64,000 bases of DNA from Bugula neritina (lineage: Eukaryota; Animalia; Bryozoa): NCBI GenBank assembly GCA_964035545.1, contig OZ037773.1, forward strand, positions 401,751 to 465,750, read 5' to 3'. Within the stretch, counting starts at the first letter, position 1, and each line of letters opens with the position of its first letter. A model generated the notes under the pieces. The model was not told the DNA's origin. It saw nothing but the letters and a program-made list of their open reading frames with translations, and did no database searches. The translations under genes were made by a program, and so were the position numbers. Of this stretch, positions 3,801 to 57,207 are shown piece after piece.

Positions 3801-6800
3801 TAGAGCCATTTTAACGAGCATCTCCGCATCACAGATAGCTTTAAAAAGCATTTTTTCAATGAGTGAAAAAATTAAATCAAAATAAGCAACCTCTAATCTA
3901 TTAAAATTTACTTTCTGCAGTCAACGGAACATATACTTCATAGACATATATTCTACAGTTGGTAGAAAATAAGAAAATTCAAATGTCTCATTAGGGTATC
4001 ATTAGGGTATCATTAGGGTATCATTAGGGTATCATTAGGGTATCATTAGGGTATCATTAGGGTATCATTAGGGTATCATTAGGGTATCATTAGGGTATCA
4101 ATAATGTATTTCTTGGGTTCTTGAGACACTCCTATATTATAATTTCCTTTGTTTCGAATAATTATATGACAGATGTATTTAGTGAATGAGTACAAAATGT
4201 TATATATTGAGTGTGTATAATGATATATAACATGCTAATTATCTAGTGATATCTATAATATTTCAGGGTCTATAGTGGTATATCATAACATATTATGTAA
4301 TATTTCAGGGTCTATAGTGGTATATAATAACATGTTATGTAATATTTCAGGGTCTATAGTGGTATATAATAACATGTTATGTAATATTTCAGGGTCTATA
4401 GTGGTATATAATAACATATTATGTAATATTTCAGGGTCTATAGTGGTATATAATAACATGTTATGTAATATTTCAGGGTCTATAGTGGTATATAATAACA
4501 TATTATGTAATATTTCAGGGTCTATAGTAGTATACAATAACATATTATGTAATATTTCAGGTGTGTTTGCTAACATACTGAACATCGTGGTTCTCTCCAG
4601 ATCTGTCAAACTTGTGACTTATAAGATATTTCTAGGCATGGCTTGCTCTGATTTACTGGTAAGGCTATGTTATGATCTGTTATGTGTTATATATATATAT
4701 ATATATATATATATACATATATATATATACATATATATATATATATATATATATATATATATATATATATATATATATATATATATATATATATATATAT
4801 ATATACATATATATATATATATATATATATATATATATATATATATATATATATATATATATAGATATATATACATATATATATATATATATATATATAT
4901 ATATATATATATATATATATATATATATATATATATATATATTATATAGTAATGGTTTATTTCTAGGTGAACATAATTCAGATTTCCTACTCTGCTATAT
5001 ACATGCTACGTTATCCAGTTCCCCGTGTTAATTCTGGTCAACCTCCTAATCTAGCTGAAGGATACTCATACTCAGACTATGTCTGGTACATGCTATGGTA
5101 CCATGTGATGAACATCTTTATGACTGTGAGTATTCAATCACATACTTCTTAGCTATGACATTCCCTACAGTTCGTATGCTGACAAGTAGCAGTGGGTTTC
5201 TGTGTGTTGATTTCATTTGAACTGCAGCCAGTGTTGTCAAAGAGTTGTGTCTAGTGCAATGAGTTTAGGAGCAGTAGTGAAGAAATTGAGATAGCCTAAG
5301 TTCTTTAAATTTCTTCAGAGATTTTAGGTTTGTGACGAGTTGAAATTTTTGTGGAAACATAACTTCTTTTGCTACGTTTCTAGAACACAGGCTTTTCTCA
5401 ACTTCTCCATTACTGTACCTACCTCGTGCAGTGAGTTTAACATGTTTGGCTATGATAATAGCATATCTATAAACCTACAATGGCTACATTCTTAGAATGA
5501 AGATAAGGTTACGCTTTACTGTAGTGTGATTTTACAGATTACACCTTACTGTAGTGTGATGGTACAGATTACACCTTACTGTATTCAGTAGTGTGATTTT
5601 ACAGATTACACCTTACTGCAATGTGATGGTACAGATTGCACCTTACAGTAGTGTGATGGTACAGATTACACCTTACTGTAGTGTGATGATATAGATTACA
5701 CTTTACTGTAGTGTGATGGTGCAGATTACACCTTACTGTAGTGTGATGGTGCAGATTACACCTTACTGTATTCAGTAGTGTGATGGTACAGATTGCACCT
5801 TACAGTAGTGTGATGGTACAGATTACACCTTACTGTAGTGTGATGGTATAGATTACACTTTACGGTAGTGTGATGGTACAGATTACACCTTACTGTATTC
5901 AGTAGTGTGATGGTACAGATTACACCTTACTGTAGTGTGATGGTACAGATTACACCTTACTGTAGTGTGCTGGTACAGATTACACCTTACGGTAGTGTGA
6001 TGGTGCAGGCTAAAACGTTTTAATGCTACAGAAGCCCTTTACTAAAAGATACAATAGCTCAATATAGGTGGAGGGATGGGCAGTTTGAATTTATGCCTAA
6101 ATTATTATATTCTGCTAAAATATTTCATACCTTTCGGCTGTAAACTCTAGTAAAGCATTTAAGCATATATTTGAAATCTTTCCCAACTTTAACCTCAAAC
6201 TATTAAAGTCAGACTGTAAATATTATATGATGGGGTATAGAAAAGTGATGGTATATAGTAGGTTACCAACAGCGTAAAGCAATGAGTTATGATGCTTTTG
6301 AAATGAGTATAAATATGAATAGGAAGTAGTACTACTATACATTAGAACAATATCCCATCTAATATTATGTTTCTAATTCACACATTGCTTTATGTCAACA
6401 TAATTGTAGATATCAAACTGGTGTGCTGTGTTGATGGCTGCTACCAGGTTGCTTGTGATTACGTTCCCCCTGAAAGCTCCCACCTATGCTAACGCTACAA
6501 ACATAAACATCGCTATCTGCTTGGTCTACTTGTGGGGGCTTTTGCTGCAGATTCCCAACTGGCTCTACTACAGGTAACTTCTTCTCTAATTGGCTGTCCT
6601 ACAGTAACGTTTTTCTCTAATTGGCTGTTCTACATGTAACTTCTCACAGTTGGTTTAAGGTCATACTTTTCATTTTCTGGCTCTTTGCCAGGTGCTTTAT
6701 GTTCTATATGAACAATGTTCCACTGATAGCTCGAACAGGTTGAATGTCACAGGAACAAAAAAAATATGAAAAGATAAAGAAACTTATGTTCTCCAATATA

Positions 6801-55100: not shown

Positions 55101-57207
55101 TATTATCTACTATATACTATATATTATACTATATTCTCTACTATATACTATATACTATACTATATTATCTACTATATACTAATATTATACTATATTCTCT
55201 ACTATATACTATATATTATACTATATTCTCTACTATATACTATATATTATACTATATTATCTACTATATACTAATATTATATTATATTATCTACTATATA
55301 CTATATATTATACTATATTATCTACTATATACTATATATTATACTATATTCTCTACTATATACTATATACTATACTATATTCTCTACTATATATTATATA
55401 TTATACCTTTTATACTCTATTATACTATATATCATACCTTATATACTCTATTATACTATATATTATATATATAGTACACTATAATATATTATAATATATA
55501 GTATATTATATTATAACAACCATAGTATACTATAATATATTATAATACATAGTATACTATAGTGTACTATAATATATTATAATATACCATAGTATACTAT
55601 AATATATTATAATATACTATAGTGCACTATAGTATATTATAATATATGGTACACTATAGTATATTATAATATATTATAGGACACTATAGTATACTATGTA
55701 TTATAATATATTATAATATGTTGACAGGCTGAGCTAACTCCTAGCACACTTCCTGTGGTATCGAGGTCGCAGAAACTACAAGTCATACTCTTTACTGACA
55801 GGAAGTCAGCTGATCTGTTTACTCGTGTAGAGGAGCTTTCAATGGACAGTGATCTGCTTCAGACCTTTGAGTTCAACTACATGTTAGTAGTACTGGTAGT
55901 AGTAGTAGTAGCAGTAGTAATAGTAATAACAGTATTAGTGGTACTAGTAGTAGTAGTAGCAGTAGTAATAACAGTGTTAGTAGTAGTAGTAGTAGTAGTA
56001 GTAGTAGTAGTAGTAGTAGTAGTAGTAGTAGTAGTAGTAGTAGTAGCGGTAGTAGTAGCAGTGGTAGTAGTAGTAATAACAGTATTAGTAGTAGTAGTAG
56101 TAGCAGCGGTAGTAATACTATTAGTAGTAATTTTAGCAGTAGTAGTAGTAATAGTAGTACCAGTAATAGTAGTAGAAGTAGTAGCACTGCTGGTAGTAGT
56201 AGTAGTAGTACTAGTAGTAGTAGTAGTAGTGTTAGTAGAGGTTGTAGTGTGAATACAGGAGACATATACTAAAAGAGATGATAACTCCATATCTGTTTCA
56301 GGGCTGACAATGAGATGAATCAGAGAATCCTGGGAACACTGACTGATGACCTTGCTGCTGTCACACCCGCACTGCTTGTTGTCAACTACAAACAGGTTCG
56401 TCTCACTCCCTGACTTAGATTTGAATTTTCCCGAAATGTTGTCTCTCAAGTTATTTGTCACTAGAATAGTTTAAGTATAATTAGAAAACAAATATGTGCA
56501 TGAGAAGACAACACATCCTTCGTGTAAAGAGAAATTGTAGTCTATCAACCTGTTATTTTATTTTTATTCAGTATACCTTTACTGCCAGTGTAGATGCACC
56601 AGTTATAAGACAGAAATAATAGTCTTTCTGTTACACTCCCCCCCTTCTTATCTCTTAAATGTACTTCTATGGTGTCTGGTAGTTAGAATGTGTACTAACG
56701 AATATCACAAAACAGAAAGCCACTATTCTATGCACCAGATAAAAATTTACCTCGATTCTCTTGTACTCCATTAGGGCGCAGTATTTATATACTCTGCTGT
56801 CGGTGGAAAGAAGGTTGATGCGCAACTAATAAAGGAGTGGCTCAGATCTGTTAGTGCAGGTAGCACTCCAGTGACAAAGCACCTGGCTAAAGGCCAGTGG
56901 AAACCCATGCACCCAGGCTATGATTTCTTGGCCATGAAGGAAGCAGATAAGAAGAGATATGTACCTGAGCGGACGAGGTTTGACATATCACCCAGACAGG
57001 ATATGATGTCAGCACAGGATACTCCTCTCGCTCTTAGTAAGCGGTTTACTCTCTAACAGTGTTAGAGTGTGATATCGGTAACAGTCCAGTTACGCTGCGA
57101 GCTTTCCTAAGTAGCCATATTGAAATGAGGAATATTTCTTGTTTGTAGATGTTGGAACTGAGAAGGTAGCAGCTTCTGTTGATCGACCTCTGCACACTGA
57201 ACTCTAA
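43149..57207 (+). CDS. TXNDC16: Thioredoxin domain-containing protein 16 (ERp90)-like, PDI family, non-catalytic, ER-lumenal
   Basis: Exons 43149-43344, 44631-44719, 45763-45836, 47602-47676, 47876-48000, 48492-48588, 50199-50388, 50522-50661, 50996-51071, 51431-51548, 52036-52185, 53005-53221, 53584-53714, 53958-54042, 54572-54725, 55728-55882, 56302-56395, 56775-57036, 57149-57207; phases consistent. Signal peptide; motifs LFDEDAVI, VHGIGAKEH, DCYDWTDVC...VSSFPTVRVY, WKPMHPGYDFLAM match TXNDC16 as recalled; C-terminal HTEL. Confidence 0.9.
44018..44090 (-). pseudogene. tRNA-like remnant (tRNA pseudogene or SINE head)
   Basis: Minus strand reads gtagcccccatggctag...ttacaat...gtagttcgattccaggtggggc; the T-loop GTTCGATTC is present but the stems are imperfect. 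Confidence 0.4.
44843..45762. repeat. 21-bp minisatellite (agtactgtatgtcacactatc)n, about 43 copies, ending at the acceptor of exon 45763
   Basis: Direct periodicity; last unit reads gtcacactgtag|GCC. Confidence 0.97.
48620..48787. repeat. (actc)n / (actcatt) microsatellite
   Basis: Directly visible, about 30 nt after donor gtgagt at 48589. Confidence 0.92.
49866..50000. repeat. Polypyrimidine (CT-rich) low-complexity tract
   Basis: Directly visible. Confidence 0.85.
50801..50995. repeat. 25-bp minisatellite (gtttatatgactgtatatattatat)n ending at the acceptor of exon 50996
   Basis: Terminal unit reads ...tatattatag|TGAGAG. Confidence 0.92.
51087..51190. repeat. 24-bp repeat (tgggcctcagtctattgtagacag)x4
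   Basis: Starts about 15 nt after the donor at 51072. Confidence 0.9.
51566..52024. repeat. About 44-bp minisatellite x8 fused to a 23-bp repeat (actacttgacactactcaggtaa)x4, together filling intron 51549-52035
   Basis: Direct periodicity. Confidence 0.93.
52210..52767. repeat. 18-bp minisatellite (ctgtatcattcacctacc)n, about 30 copies
   Basis: Direct periodicity, starting about 25 nt after the donor at 52186. Confidence 0.95.
54041..54369. repeat. 32-bp minisatellite (ctcagtatacttacatatagtactgtatatca)x~10 beginning at a splice donor
   Basis: First unit overlaps CT|gtaagt at 54041-54048. Confidence 0.95.
54780..55718. repeat. AT-rich compound satellite (tatattatactatattctctactatatac-type, then tatactataatatat-type) filling intron 54726-55727
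   Basis: Directly visible. Confidence 0.93.
55883..56250. repeat. (gta)n trinucleotide microsatellite starting at donor gttagt
   Basis: Directly visible. Confidence 0.95.

Follow-up and report, generated by a model that had tools for sequence, protein, structure and literature searches.

Why do so many of the tandem repeats in one stretch of bryozoan DNA begin or end at the edge of an exon, when their units are unrelated from intron to intron? The stretch, hereafter the window, is a 64,000-nucleotide segment of Bugula neritina (positions 401751-465750 of contig C9 of a 216-Mb assembly), AT-rich animal DNA with predicted genes for two G-protein-coupled receptors (GPCRs), an MLH3-like protein, a thioredoxin-domain protein and an F-box/LRR protein. 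An initial annotation had named 13 arrays in it and proposed that tandem duplication is seeded at exon-intron junctions. Minisatellites that span such junctions had previously been described gene by gene in amphioxus, where they go by the name of mirages and have had no explanation; here their frequency can be measured, and roughly one in two intronic minisatellites is found no more than 30 nt from a splice site, 2.6-4 times the expectation. We conclude that the arrays are mirage-type minisatellites, abundant here in a second phylum, and that they represent no new kind of element and no invention peculiar to this lineage.

Arrays at splice junctions in the window

Each of the 13 named arrays is recovered by Tandem Repeats Finder (TRF) and is therefore real, and every one of them lies 0-30 nt from a splice site in the predicted gene models (Table 1). 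With TRF units of 11-65 nt present in 2-58 copies, these are head-to-tail repeats of minisatellite size within genes. The annotation had also held that the functional GT or AG can itself be part of the first or last unit, and this is the case for the arrays beginning at 4256, 6560, 12529, 44844, 50841 and 54040; the counter-examples that it gave, at 2235, 5509 and 61086, do sit internally in their introns.

On the acceptor side, the array at 4256 presents seven copies of taatatttcagg, one per unit, followed by the real acceptor of GPCR exon 4561-4658, which is provided by the last partial unit together with one exonic nucleotide. In the region 4239-4946, this 42-nt unit is a multiple of three in length and is open in the frame of the next GPCR exon, so that splicing to a copy further upstream would lengthen the protein by 14 residues for each unit and bring in no stop. 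Units of the array at 44844 end in tatcag and the last one in ctgtag, which is the acceptor of the exon that follows, and the units at 12529 hold ttacctacag, similar to the real ttacctactgcag. Ahead of the 50841 array, positions 50816-50840 (tatagtgaaagtatctgg) comprise an older copy of the acceptor and ~15 exonic bases.

On the donor side, the first unit of the array at 6560 joins the final 14 nt of exon 6410-6573 to the donor CAG/GTAACT (a slash within a sequence or between adjacent positions marks the exon-intron boundary). This piece is triplicated, with the donor damaged in copies 2 and 3, and the array reads as a textbook mirage. The first unit at 54040 likewise contains the last 3 exonic bases and the donor ACT/gtaagt, an intact copy of which recurs at ~54170. 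The donor GTTAGT beside the 55885 array keeps the phase of its GTA or TAG triplets, although TRF places the start of the array 2 nt further in.

Table 1. Tandem arrays and predicted genes of the window. Distances are to the nearest predicted splice site; a slash within a sequence or between adjacent positions marks the exon-intron boundary.
Feature	Position	Strand	Unit and copies	Relation to splice sites; remarks
Array	4256-4561	+	42 nt x 7.3	acceptor side, 0 nt
Array	4688-4948	+	(TA)131	fills intron 4659-4966; donor 29 nt away, acceptor 18 nt
Array	6560-6644	+	31 nt x 2.7 (duplication)	donor side; begins 14 nt inside exon
Array	12529-12636	+	29 nt x 3.7	stops 5 nt before acceptor of last GPCR exon 12642-12911
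Array	27201-28043	-	14 nt x 58, pyrimidine-rich tactctactctgta	ends 9 nt upstream of acceptor of last MLH3 exon 26986-27191
Array	35369-35700	-	21 and 40 nt	in MLH3 intron 35336-35798; 33 nt from acceptor
Array	44844-45758	+	21 nt x 43.8	4 nt from acceptor of exon 45763-45836
Array	48619-48786	+	11 nt, ACTCAC-rich	30 nt past donor CAA/GTGAGT at 48588/48589 (exon 48492-48588 uncertain)
Array	50841-50994 (50816-50994 with older copy)	+	25 nt x 6	ends 1 nt before acceptor tatag/TGAGAG of exon 50996-51071
Array	51087-51190	+	24 nt x 4.3	15 nt past donor 51071/51072
Array	51566-51923	+	44 nt x 8.3	17 nt past donor 51548/51549
Array	51917-52024	+	23 nt x 4.7, units ending CAGGTAA	ends 11 nt before acceptor 52035/52036
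Array	52213-52766	+	18 nt x 30.7	27 nt past donor 52185/52186
Array	54040-54369	+	32 nt x 10	donor side; begins 3 nt inside exon
Array complex	54767-55697	+	31 nt, AT-rich	fills intron 54726-55727; donor 41 nt away, acceptor 30 nt
Array	55885-56238	+	(TAG/GTA)118	begins 2 nt into intron 55883-56301
Counter-example array	5509-6008	+	30 nt	middle of intron 5126-6409; 383 and 401 nt from its ends
Counter-example array	61086-61399	-	25 nt	in intron 60840-61491; 92 and 246 nt from its ends
Gene A, Srw-type GPCR		+		multi-exon; exons hand-curated
Gene A exons	4561-4658, 4967-5125, 6410-6573, 10109-10276, 10933-11026, 12642-12911	+
Gene A upstream exon	end at 944	+		probable; first exon uncertain
Gene B, GPCR		-		two exons
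Gene C, MLH3-like	26986-39205	-		FQCAHGRP motif in last exon 26986-27191; MutL_C Pfam match in neighbouring exon
Gene D, thioredoxin-domain protein	43149-57056	+		17 predicted exons, 796 aa
Gene E, F-box/LRR		-

Placement relative to chance

To assess these positions against chance, the length of each intron and of each array was kept and the arrays were dropped uniformly into the non-array sequence of the same intron, the main test being restricted to arrays with a TRF score of at least 50 and a period of at least 7. Because the window had been selected for the pattern, 200 kb of contig C1, a different chromosome (3000001-3200000; the C1 block), taken unseen and with its genes modelled alike, was used as an independent test. 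Within 30 nt of a splice site lie 13 of the 23 arrays in the window, where 6.1 are expected, and 13 of the 32 in the C1 block, where 3.7 are expected (3.5-fold). For the two samples together the count is 26 of 55 against 9.8, which was reached in none of 20,000 simulations (p<5e-5). The arrays are thus closer to splice sites than their re-placed counterparts, and their positional enrichment at splice junctions, which is observed directly, is statistically robust.

The enrichment is seen in several partitions of the data. Within 5 nt of a splice site there are 10 arrays against 2.5 expected (window and C1 block), and in introns with at least 150 nt of non-array sequence 21 of 48 arrays lie within 30 nt against 5.2 expected; all TRF arrays of the window, unfiltered, give 15 of 26 against 8.2. 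Introns with a single array have a median normalised distance of 0.17 (Kolmogorov-Smirnov test against uniform, p=5e-4), and tandem-repeat density in the two samples is higher at intron ends than in the middle. Two-copy duplications (TRF score at least 50, fewer than 3.5 copies) are enriched like the large arrays, with 11 of 28 near a junction against 4.2 expected, which argues for biased birth rather than biased survival alone. Repeats with a period below 7 show no enrichment (2 against 3.0 expected, in a small sample of 13). On the donor side the distances are 0, 0, 0 and then 12-30, leaving a gap at 1-11, and on the acceptor side they run continuously from 0 to 11; selection on the donor consensus would be expected to produce such a donor-side gap at +1 to +11.

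These figures might be an artefact of gene prediction or of the choice of window, or reflect mere density of subtelomeric minisatellites. Arrays cover 16.5% of the window and 3.6% of the C1 block, and the window, at a distance of 0.40-0.47 Mb from the beginning of contig C9, may belong to a subtelomeric, minisatellite-rich zone. The splice sites moreover come from our own predictor, whose multi-gene, two-strand version fused neighbouring genes and antisense shadows. However, it is the unselected, array-poor C1 block that gives the stronger ratio, and density accounts for the number of arrays and not for their placement inside introns. TRF matches in the score range 30-49, mostly the product of chance in AT-rich DNA, show no enrichment (8 of 75 against 9.0 expected), and since they are uniform the pipeline itself does not draw repeats to splice sites. 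Nearly all of the junction-proximal C1 arrays abut strongly coding open reading frames (ORFs) when the array table is set against the ORF list, and a set of window exons and splice sites is confirmed by conservation (see below). An artefact is therefore already largely refuted, and we regard it as very unlikely.

Composition of the repeat units

In about one third of the junction-proximal arrays the unit reproduces the junction, including as many as ~15 exonic bases, and the others begin 12-30 nt inside the intron. Units that join a splice signal to exonic bases are directly visible at 6560 (14 nt), 54040 (3), 4256 (1) and in the old copy at 50816 (~15), and also in the C1 block at 152042, 163053 and 176073. 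In that block, six CAG/GTRAGG donors stand at 152042-176, ttctgyag/ATTG is repeated at 163053-163151, and tttctctcag/GTACATT occurs three times at 176073-176125; a further array, at 170694-171572, consists of 30 copies of tgtcttgtag and ends at an acceptor. The arrays at 51087, 51566, 52213 and 48619 have units that do not span the junction and start 15-30 nt into the intron, and would thus be classed as junction-proximal arrays, not as mirages in the strict sense.

The annotation had described the arrays as built from splice-signal sequence. This stands for those that overlap or abut a junction, where 6 of 11 acceptor-abutting arrays have a strong acceptor match against an estimated ~2 expected, because the real acceptor is included. 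It fails for the arrays that start 12-30 nt into the intron, and the overall motif excess is weak. Consensus units contain 10.1 sense donor-like matches per kb against 2.3 per kb in non-array intron, with a few arrays carrying most of them. Counted per array, a donor match is present in 8 of 56 against ~4 expected and a strong sense acceptor match in 12 of 56 against ~10 (both expectations are estimates), which rules out the general statement that all units are made of splice signals.

Some short words recur in the units nonetheless. CAGGTA is 5-fold over-represented, and among 94 consensus units from the window and the C1 block the words AGTATA or TATACT, TAGTAT or ATACTA, TATAGT, and ACTGTA or TACAGT are each found in 9-15 unrelated units against ~2 expected. 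The excess is 5-6 times for AGTATA or TATACT, TAGTAT and ACTGTA, much of it due to one class of AT-rich TATAG or TACTA repeats; these words could represent a shared core or simply one AT-rich class of cryptic simplicity.

The units of the arrays at 48619, 52213 and 54040 score as antisense donor-like sites. Donor complements can be read in the units as ACTCAC (48619-48786), CACCTACC and ATACTTAC (52213-52766 and 54050-54369) and ACTTACCT (12529-12636). Such units resemble the 5' end of U1 and could pair in RNA with the nearby donor.

Arrays and intron length in a sister species

A 2085-nt contig from a sister species (L025), found by word search with ORF 52944-53222 and encoding a protein 93% identical, aligns to window positions 51295-54112. 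Its five exons have the same lengths as those of the thioredoxin-domain gene and are 94-96% identical, all ten splice sites that flank them are conserved, and the introns are ~88% identical, with indels. The five predicted exons and their ten flanking splice sites are thus confirmed by conservation between the species.

The positions of the arrays are the same in the two species and their copy numbers differ, as can be seen directly in the alignment. The 44-mer after donor 51548/51549 has 1 copy in the sister species against 8.3 in the window, and the 18-mer after donor 52185/52186 has 3 copies, in the same place, against 30.7. The 23-mer before acceptor 52035/52036 has 4.6 copies against 4.7, and the 32-mer donor array is also present, the contig ending inside it. 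For the two introns with arrays, the lengths are 182 and 285 nt in the sister species and 487 and 819 nt in the window, whereas the two introns without arrays are similar in length (414 and 218 nt in the sister, 362 and 228 nt in the window). Shared positions with differing copy number indicate that the arrays are old, fixed in place and turning over, and that they account for the difference in intron length; consistent with this, the idea of introns growing from their ends is borne out, the difference being array copies. The 44-mer, present once and in place in the sister species, was amplified in situ. Outside introns, a GT-rich array downstream of GPCR gene B (15677-15764) and a (CTA)n array further upstream (18232-18372) occur at matching places in another sister contig (L002); non-intronic arrays are therefore long-lived too.

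The age of the arrays bears on the possibility that retention, and not birth, is biased. Duplications would then arise uniformly along introns and persist next to junctions, where deletions damage the splice site, or the introns would once have been very short. Arrays old enough to be common to sister species fit this account, as do array-bearing introns with 21, 47, 65 and 71 nt of non-array sequence, less than in the shortest array-free intron of the window (122 nt), and an ancestral length of at most 182 nt for intron 51549-52035. The null model, however, already conditions on non-array length, and the excess rises to 4-fold where at least 150 nt of free sequence are available. Array-free introns have medians of 318 nt in the window and 446 nt in the C1 block, which means that introns are not generally short, and the equal enrichment of two-copy duplications argues that retention is not the whole story. 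As the principal cause we consider it unlikely.

The same comparison speaks to whether the arrays are selected splicing devices, in which ladders of decoy or alternative sites, repeated enhancers, pyrimidine tracts or U1-like pairing with donors would let copy number tune isoforms. The decoys are often intact (seven tttcagg, 30 tgtcttgtag, six CAG/GTRAGG), the 42-nt acceptor array is open and in frame with its exon, array positions are kept between the sister species, and antisense donor-like units occur at 48619, 52213 and 54040, to which the unit at 12529 with its complement of the donor consensus can be added by eye. Against this, a ten-fold difference in copy number between close species gives no sign of constraint, the units are unrelated from intron to intron, most unit lengths are not multiples of three, and the extra sites are silent in both studied precedents (PMC1557585, PMC3087553). 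We think such a role improbable, and more so than biased retention.

Related arrays elsewhere in the genome

The 42-mer unit of the 4256 array and the 44-mer unit of the 51566 array are found in the genome at their own locus only. The 32-nt unit of 54050-54369 matches, at 70-78%, tandem arrays with 12-, 28- and 32-nt periods that are spread over at least six other chromosomes. Arrays on three contigs (C6 at 7.52 Mb, C5 at 15.71 Mb and C1 at 33.52 Mb) have 28-32-nt units, all with GTAAGTATA, and one of them has ~50 copies. GTAAGTATA is the donor consensus of this species, and together with AT-rich words it is the chief sequence common to the 32-mer and the similar arrays, so that convergence is likely.

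The dispersed matches of the 32-nt unit are what could be expected of mobile elements, such as introners or satellite-carrying transposons, that insert at splice sites or create them. With the three units compared, however, the same element was not found at many loci: the 42-mer and 44-mer are single-locus units, the 32-mer matches, at 70-78% only, are centred on the donor consensus, where convergence is likely, and the single in-place copy of the 44-mer in the sister species points to amplification in situ. Of the explanations weighed here this is the one to which we give the least credence.

One further locus, a COG3-like gene (C7:15741744-15744848) that was reached through its array and stands as an illustration outside the statistics, has four consecutive introns that consist almost wholly of different private minisatellites (36-mer, 12-mer, 9/11-mer and 17-mer). 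In two of these four introns the donor is the first unit (GTAACTTAC... and GTTAGTTACTAGT...), and the 17-mer array forms a ladder of ~15 GTTAGT sites.

Comparison with known systems

The annotation had regarded the process as lineage-specific, which is not supported in that form: the same structures are known from amphioxus (PMC3087553, PMC3902484) and from human F7 (PMC1557585), and intron-end repeats from plants and green algae (PMC3887541). In amphioxus, mirages occur in Adh3, the globins BflGb6/9, troponin C and PGBD5 (Canestro et al. 2002, as cited in PMC3087553 and PMC3902484), and splicing is undisturbed by them (PMC3087553, PMC3902484). Common to both animals are tandem repeats within genes whose unit spans the exon-intron boundary on the donor or acceptor side, many copies that keep AG or GT, and units in the 10-160 bp range; copy number, unstable in amphioxus, differs here between sister species. 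The junction-spanning subset here conforms to the structural definition of amphioxus mirages. The B. neritina arrays differ in belonging to another phylum, in that ~2/3 of the junction-proximal ones lack the junction and start 12-30 nt inside the intron, in that some introns are almost wholly a private array, and in that enrichment is measured against a within-intron null. Undisturbed splicing is reported for the amphioxus mirages.

The donor-side arrays at 54040-54369, 6560-6644 and 152042 of the C1 block resemble the 37-bp variable number of tandem repeats (VNTR) of human F7 intron 7 (IVS7). In both, the first unit spans the boundary, so that the authentic donor is followed by identical pseudo-donors; those of F7 are functional and remain silent, the most upstream site being chosen (PMC1557585). 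The F7 VNTR differs in that it stands alone, at one locus of a genome with few such arrays, and in that its site choice was tested experimentally; the present arrays occupy many loci.

In 31 plant and algal genomes tandem repeats are in excess toward intron ends, with a U-shaped distribution (PMC3887541), and as in B. neritina they are more abundant there than in the middle. That study used relative position in tenths of the intron, and the abundant intronic motif in its two green algae is the dinucleotide GT/AC (PMC3887541), whereas the signal here lies in 11-65-nt units within 30 nt of the junction and periods below 7 are not enriched. In the Rogers model, introns are gained by duplication of an exon segment containing AGGT; cases are given in PMC4974935, and the model has been proposed for mirages (PMC3087553). 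Units with AG/GT are found here too (CAGGTAA in 51917-52024), and some introns consist almost entirely of such units. However, the sister species shares introns 51549-52035 and 52186-53004 and those next to them, and no homology between exon and unit beyond the junction was seen in the window arrays; in this comparison with one sister species none of the introns gives evidence of being new.

Among the papers searched on bryozoan genomes with tandem repeats and introns and on B. neritina assemblies, none describes this pattern, and the B. neritina genome paper is silent on tandem repeats.

Proposed origin

We consider it rather probable that these junction-proximal, mirage-type minisatellites do not form a dedicated regulatory device and are, for the most part, neutral by-products of a mutational bias at junctions, by-products that selection on the splice consensus then trims. 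In this account, short pieces of 10-65 bp would be duplicated in tandem at exon-intron junctions or within ~30 nt of them, and where the duplicated piece spans the junction every unit would receive a copy of the donor or acceptor. The extra copies would be tolerated as long as the spliceosome keeps to the exon-proximal site, and duplications that break the donor consensus or fall within exons would be removed by selection. Replication slippage or unequal exchange would then cause growth and shrinkage, giving each intron a private array and lengthening introns from their ends. Tolerance through site choice is suggested by analogy with the F7 IVS7 and amphioxus precedents, and from the properties of the arrays described above we infer that slippage is the mechanism and that the bias arises by mutation.

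Several points weigh against this account. Arrays that start 12-30 nt into the intron and contain no junction sequence are not explained by a single duplication of the junction. Retention could contribute to the enrichment, as deletions next to junctions are selected against. The splice sites are predicted, with conservation confirming five exons only, and the sample is 264 kb of a 216-Mb genome, part of it the window that was picked for showing the pattern. The sister contig L025 comes from a short-read assembly with k=31, in which arrays may in principle have collapsed, but it runs through the arrays unbroken, which argues for short arrays in that species.

A stronger version, which we offer tentatively and hold to be possible rather than probable, is that the germline of this animal has true hot spots of short tandem duplication at its splice junctions, as in amphioxus, through breaks and repair linked to splicing, transcription or chromatin. 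R-loops, or repair linked to the spliceosome or to nucleosome edges, are possible causes of the junction duplications. If so, the process would be a main driver of intron size, turning whole introns into private minisatellites, and would supply raw material for intron sliding or gain.

The small, chromosome-level genome (216 Mb) makes it testable whether mutations concentrate at junctions, by what means spliceosomes pass over ladders of perfect decoys, and what share of intron length turnover is due to arrays. As such arrays put dozens of consensus splice sites beside the real ones, they will also mislead gene predictors.

Genes and gene models

Exon boundaries were obtained with a frame-tracking exon-chaining script of our own that uses codon log-odds and splice-site weight matrices, run for one gene at a time on territories set by hand; GPCR gene A was curated by hand. 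Exon chaining gives complete predicted ORFs of 412 aa for gene B, 1678 aa for gene C, 796 aa for gene D and 667 aa for gene E. The exon at 48492-48588 is the least certain of gene D. A scan of the window returned no tRNA genes and no Rfam matches.

The best named relative of GPCR B is a protein of the bryozoan Watersipora subatra (46% identity), and a 91% identical protein is encoded on contigs of the SRA runs SRR4020080/82 and of one Joint Genome Institute (JGI) metagenome. Two sister-species contigs (L002 and L003) align to window positions 14704-18162 with 82-84% identity, non-coding DNA included. Scans of metagenome contigs for more sister-species loci with exons 52038-52184 and 12642-12908 gave no match, nor did a word search with ORF 50146-50394.

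Within gene A, an ORF in intron 6574-10108 (9749-9886, + strand) resembles a second segment of a GPCR from intracellular loop 2 to transmembrane helix 4 (ICL2-TM4), and could be a relic or an alternative exon. A fragment of a reverse transcriptase of the long interspersed nuclear element (LINE) type lies at 39978-41771, between the MLH3 and thioredoxin-domain genes. A short dispersed repeat, 90% identical, is shared by a window intron (12204-12254) and a different intron of the sister species (positions 1-51 of L025). In the assembly as a whole, small contigs (e.g. C206, C190 and C72) hold most of the best protein-kinase matches, whose reading frames continue across TAA and TAG; such contigs come from a ciliate that contaminates the assembly and are not animal DNA.

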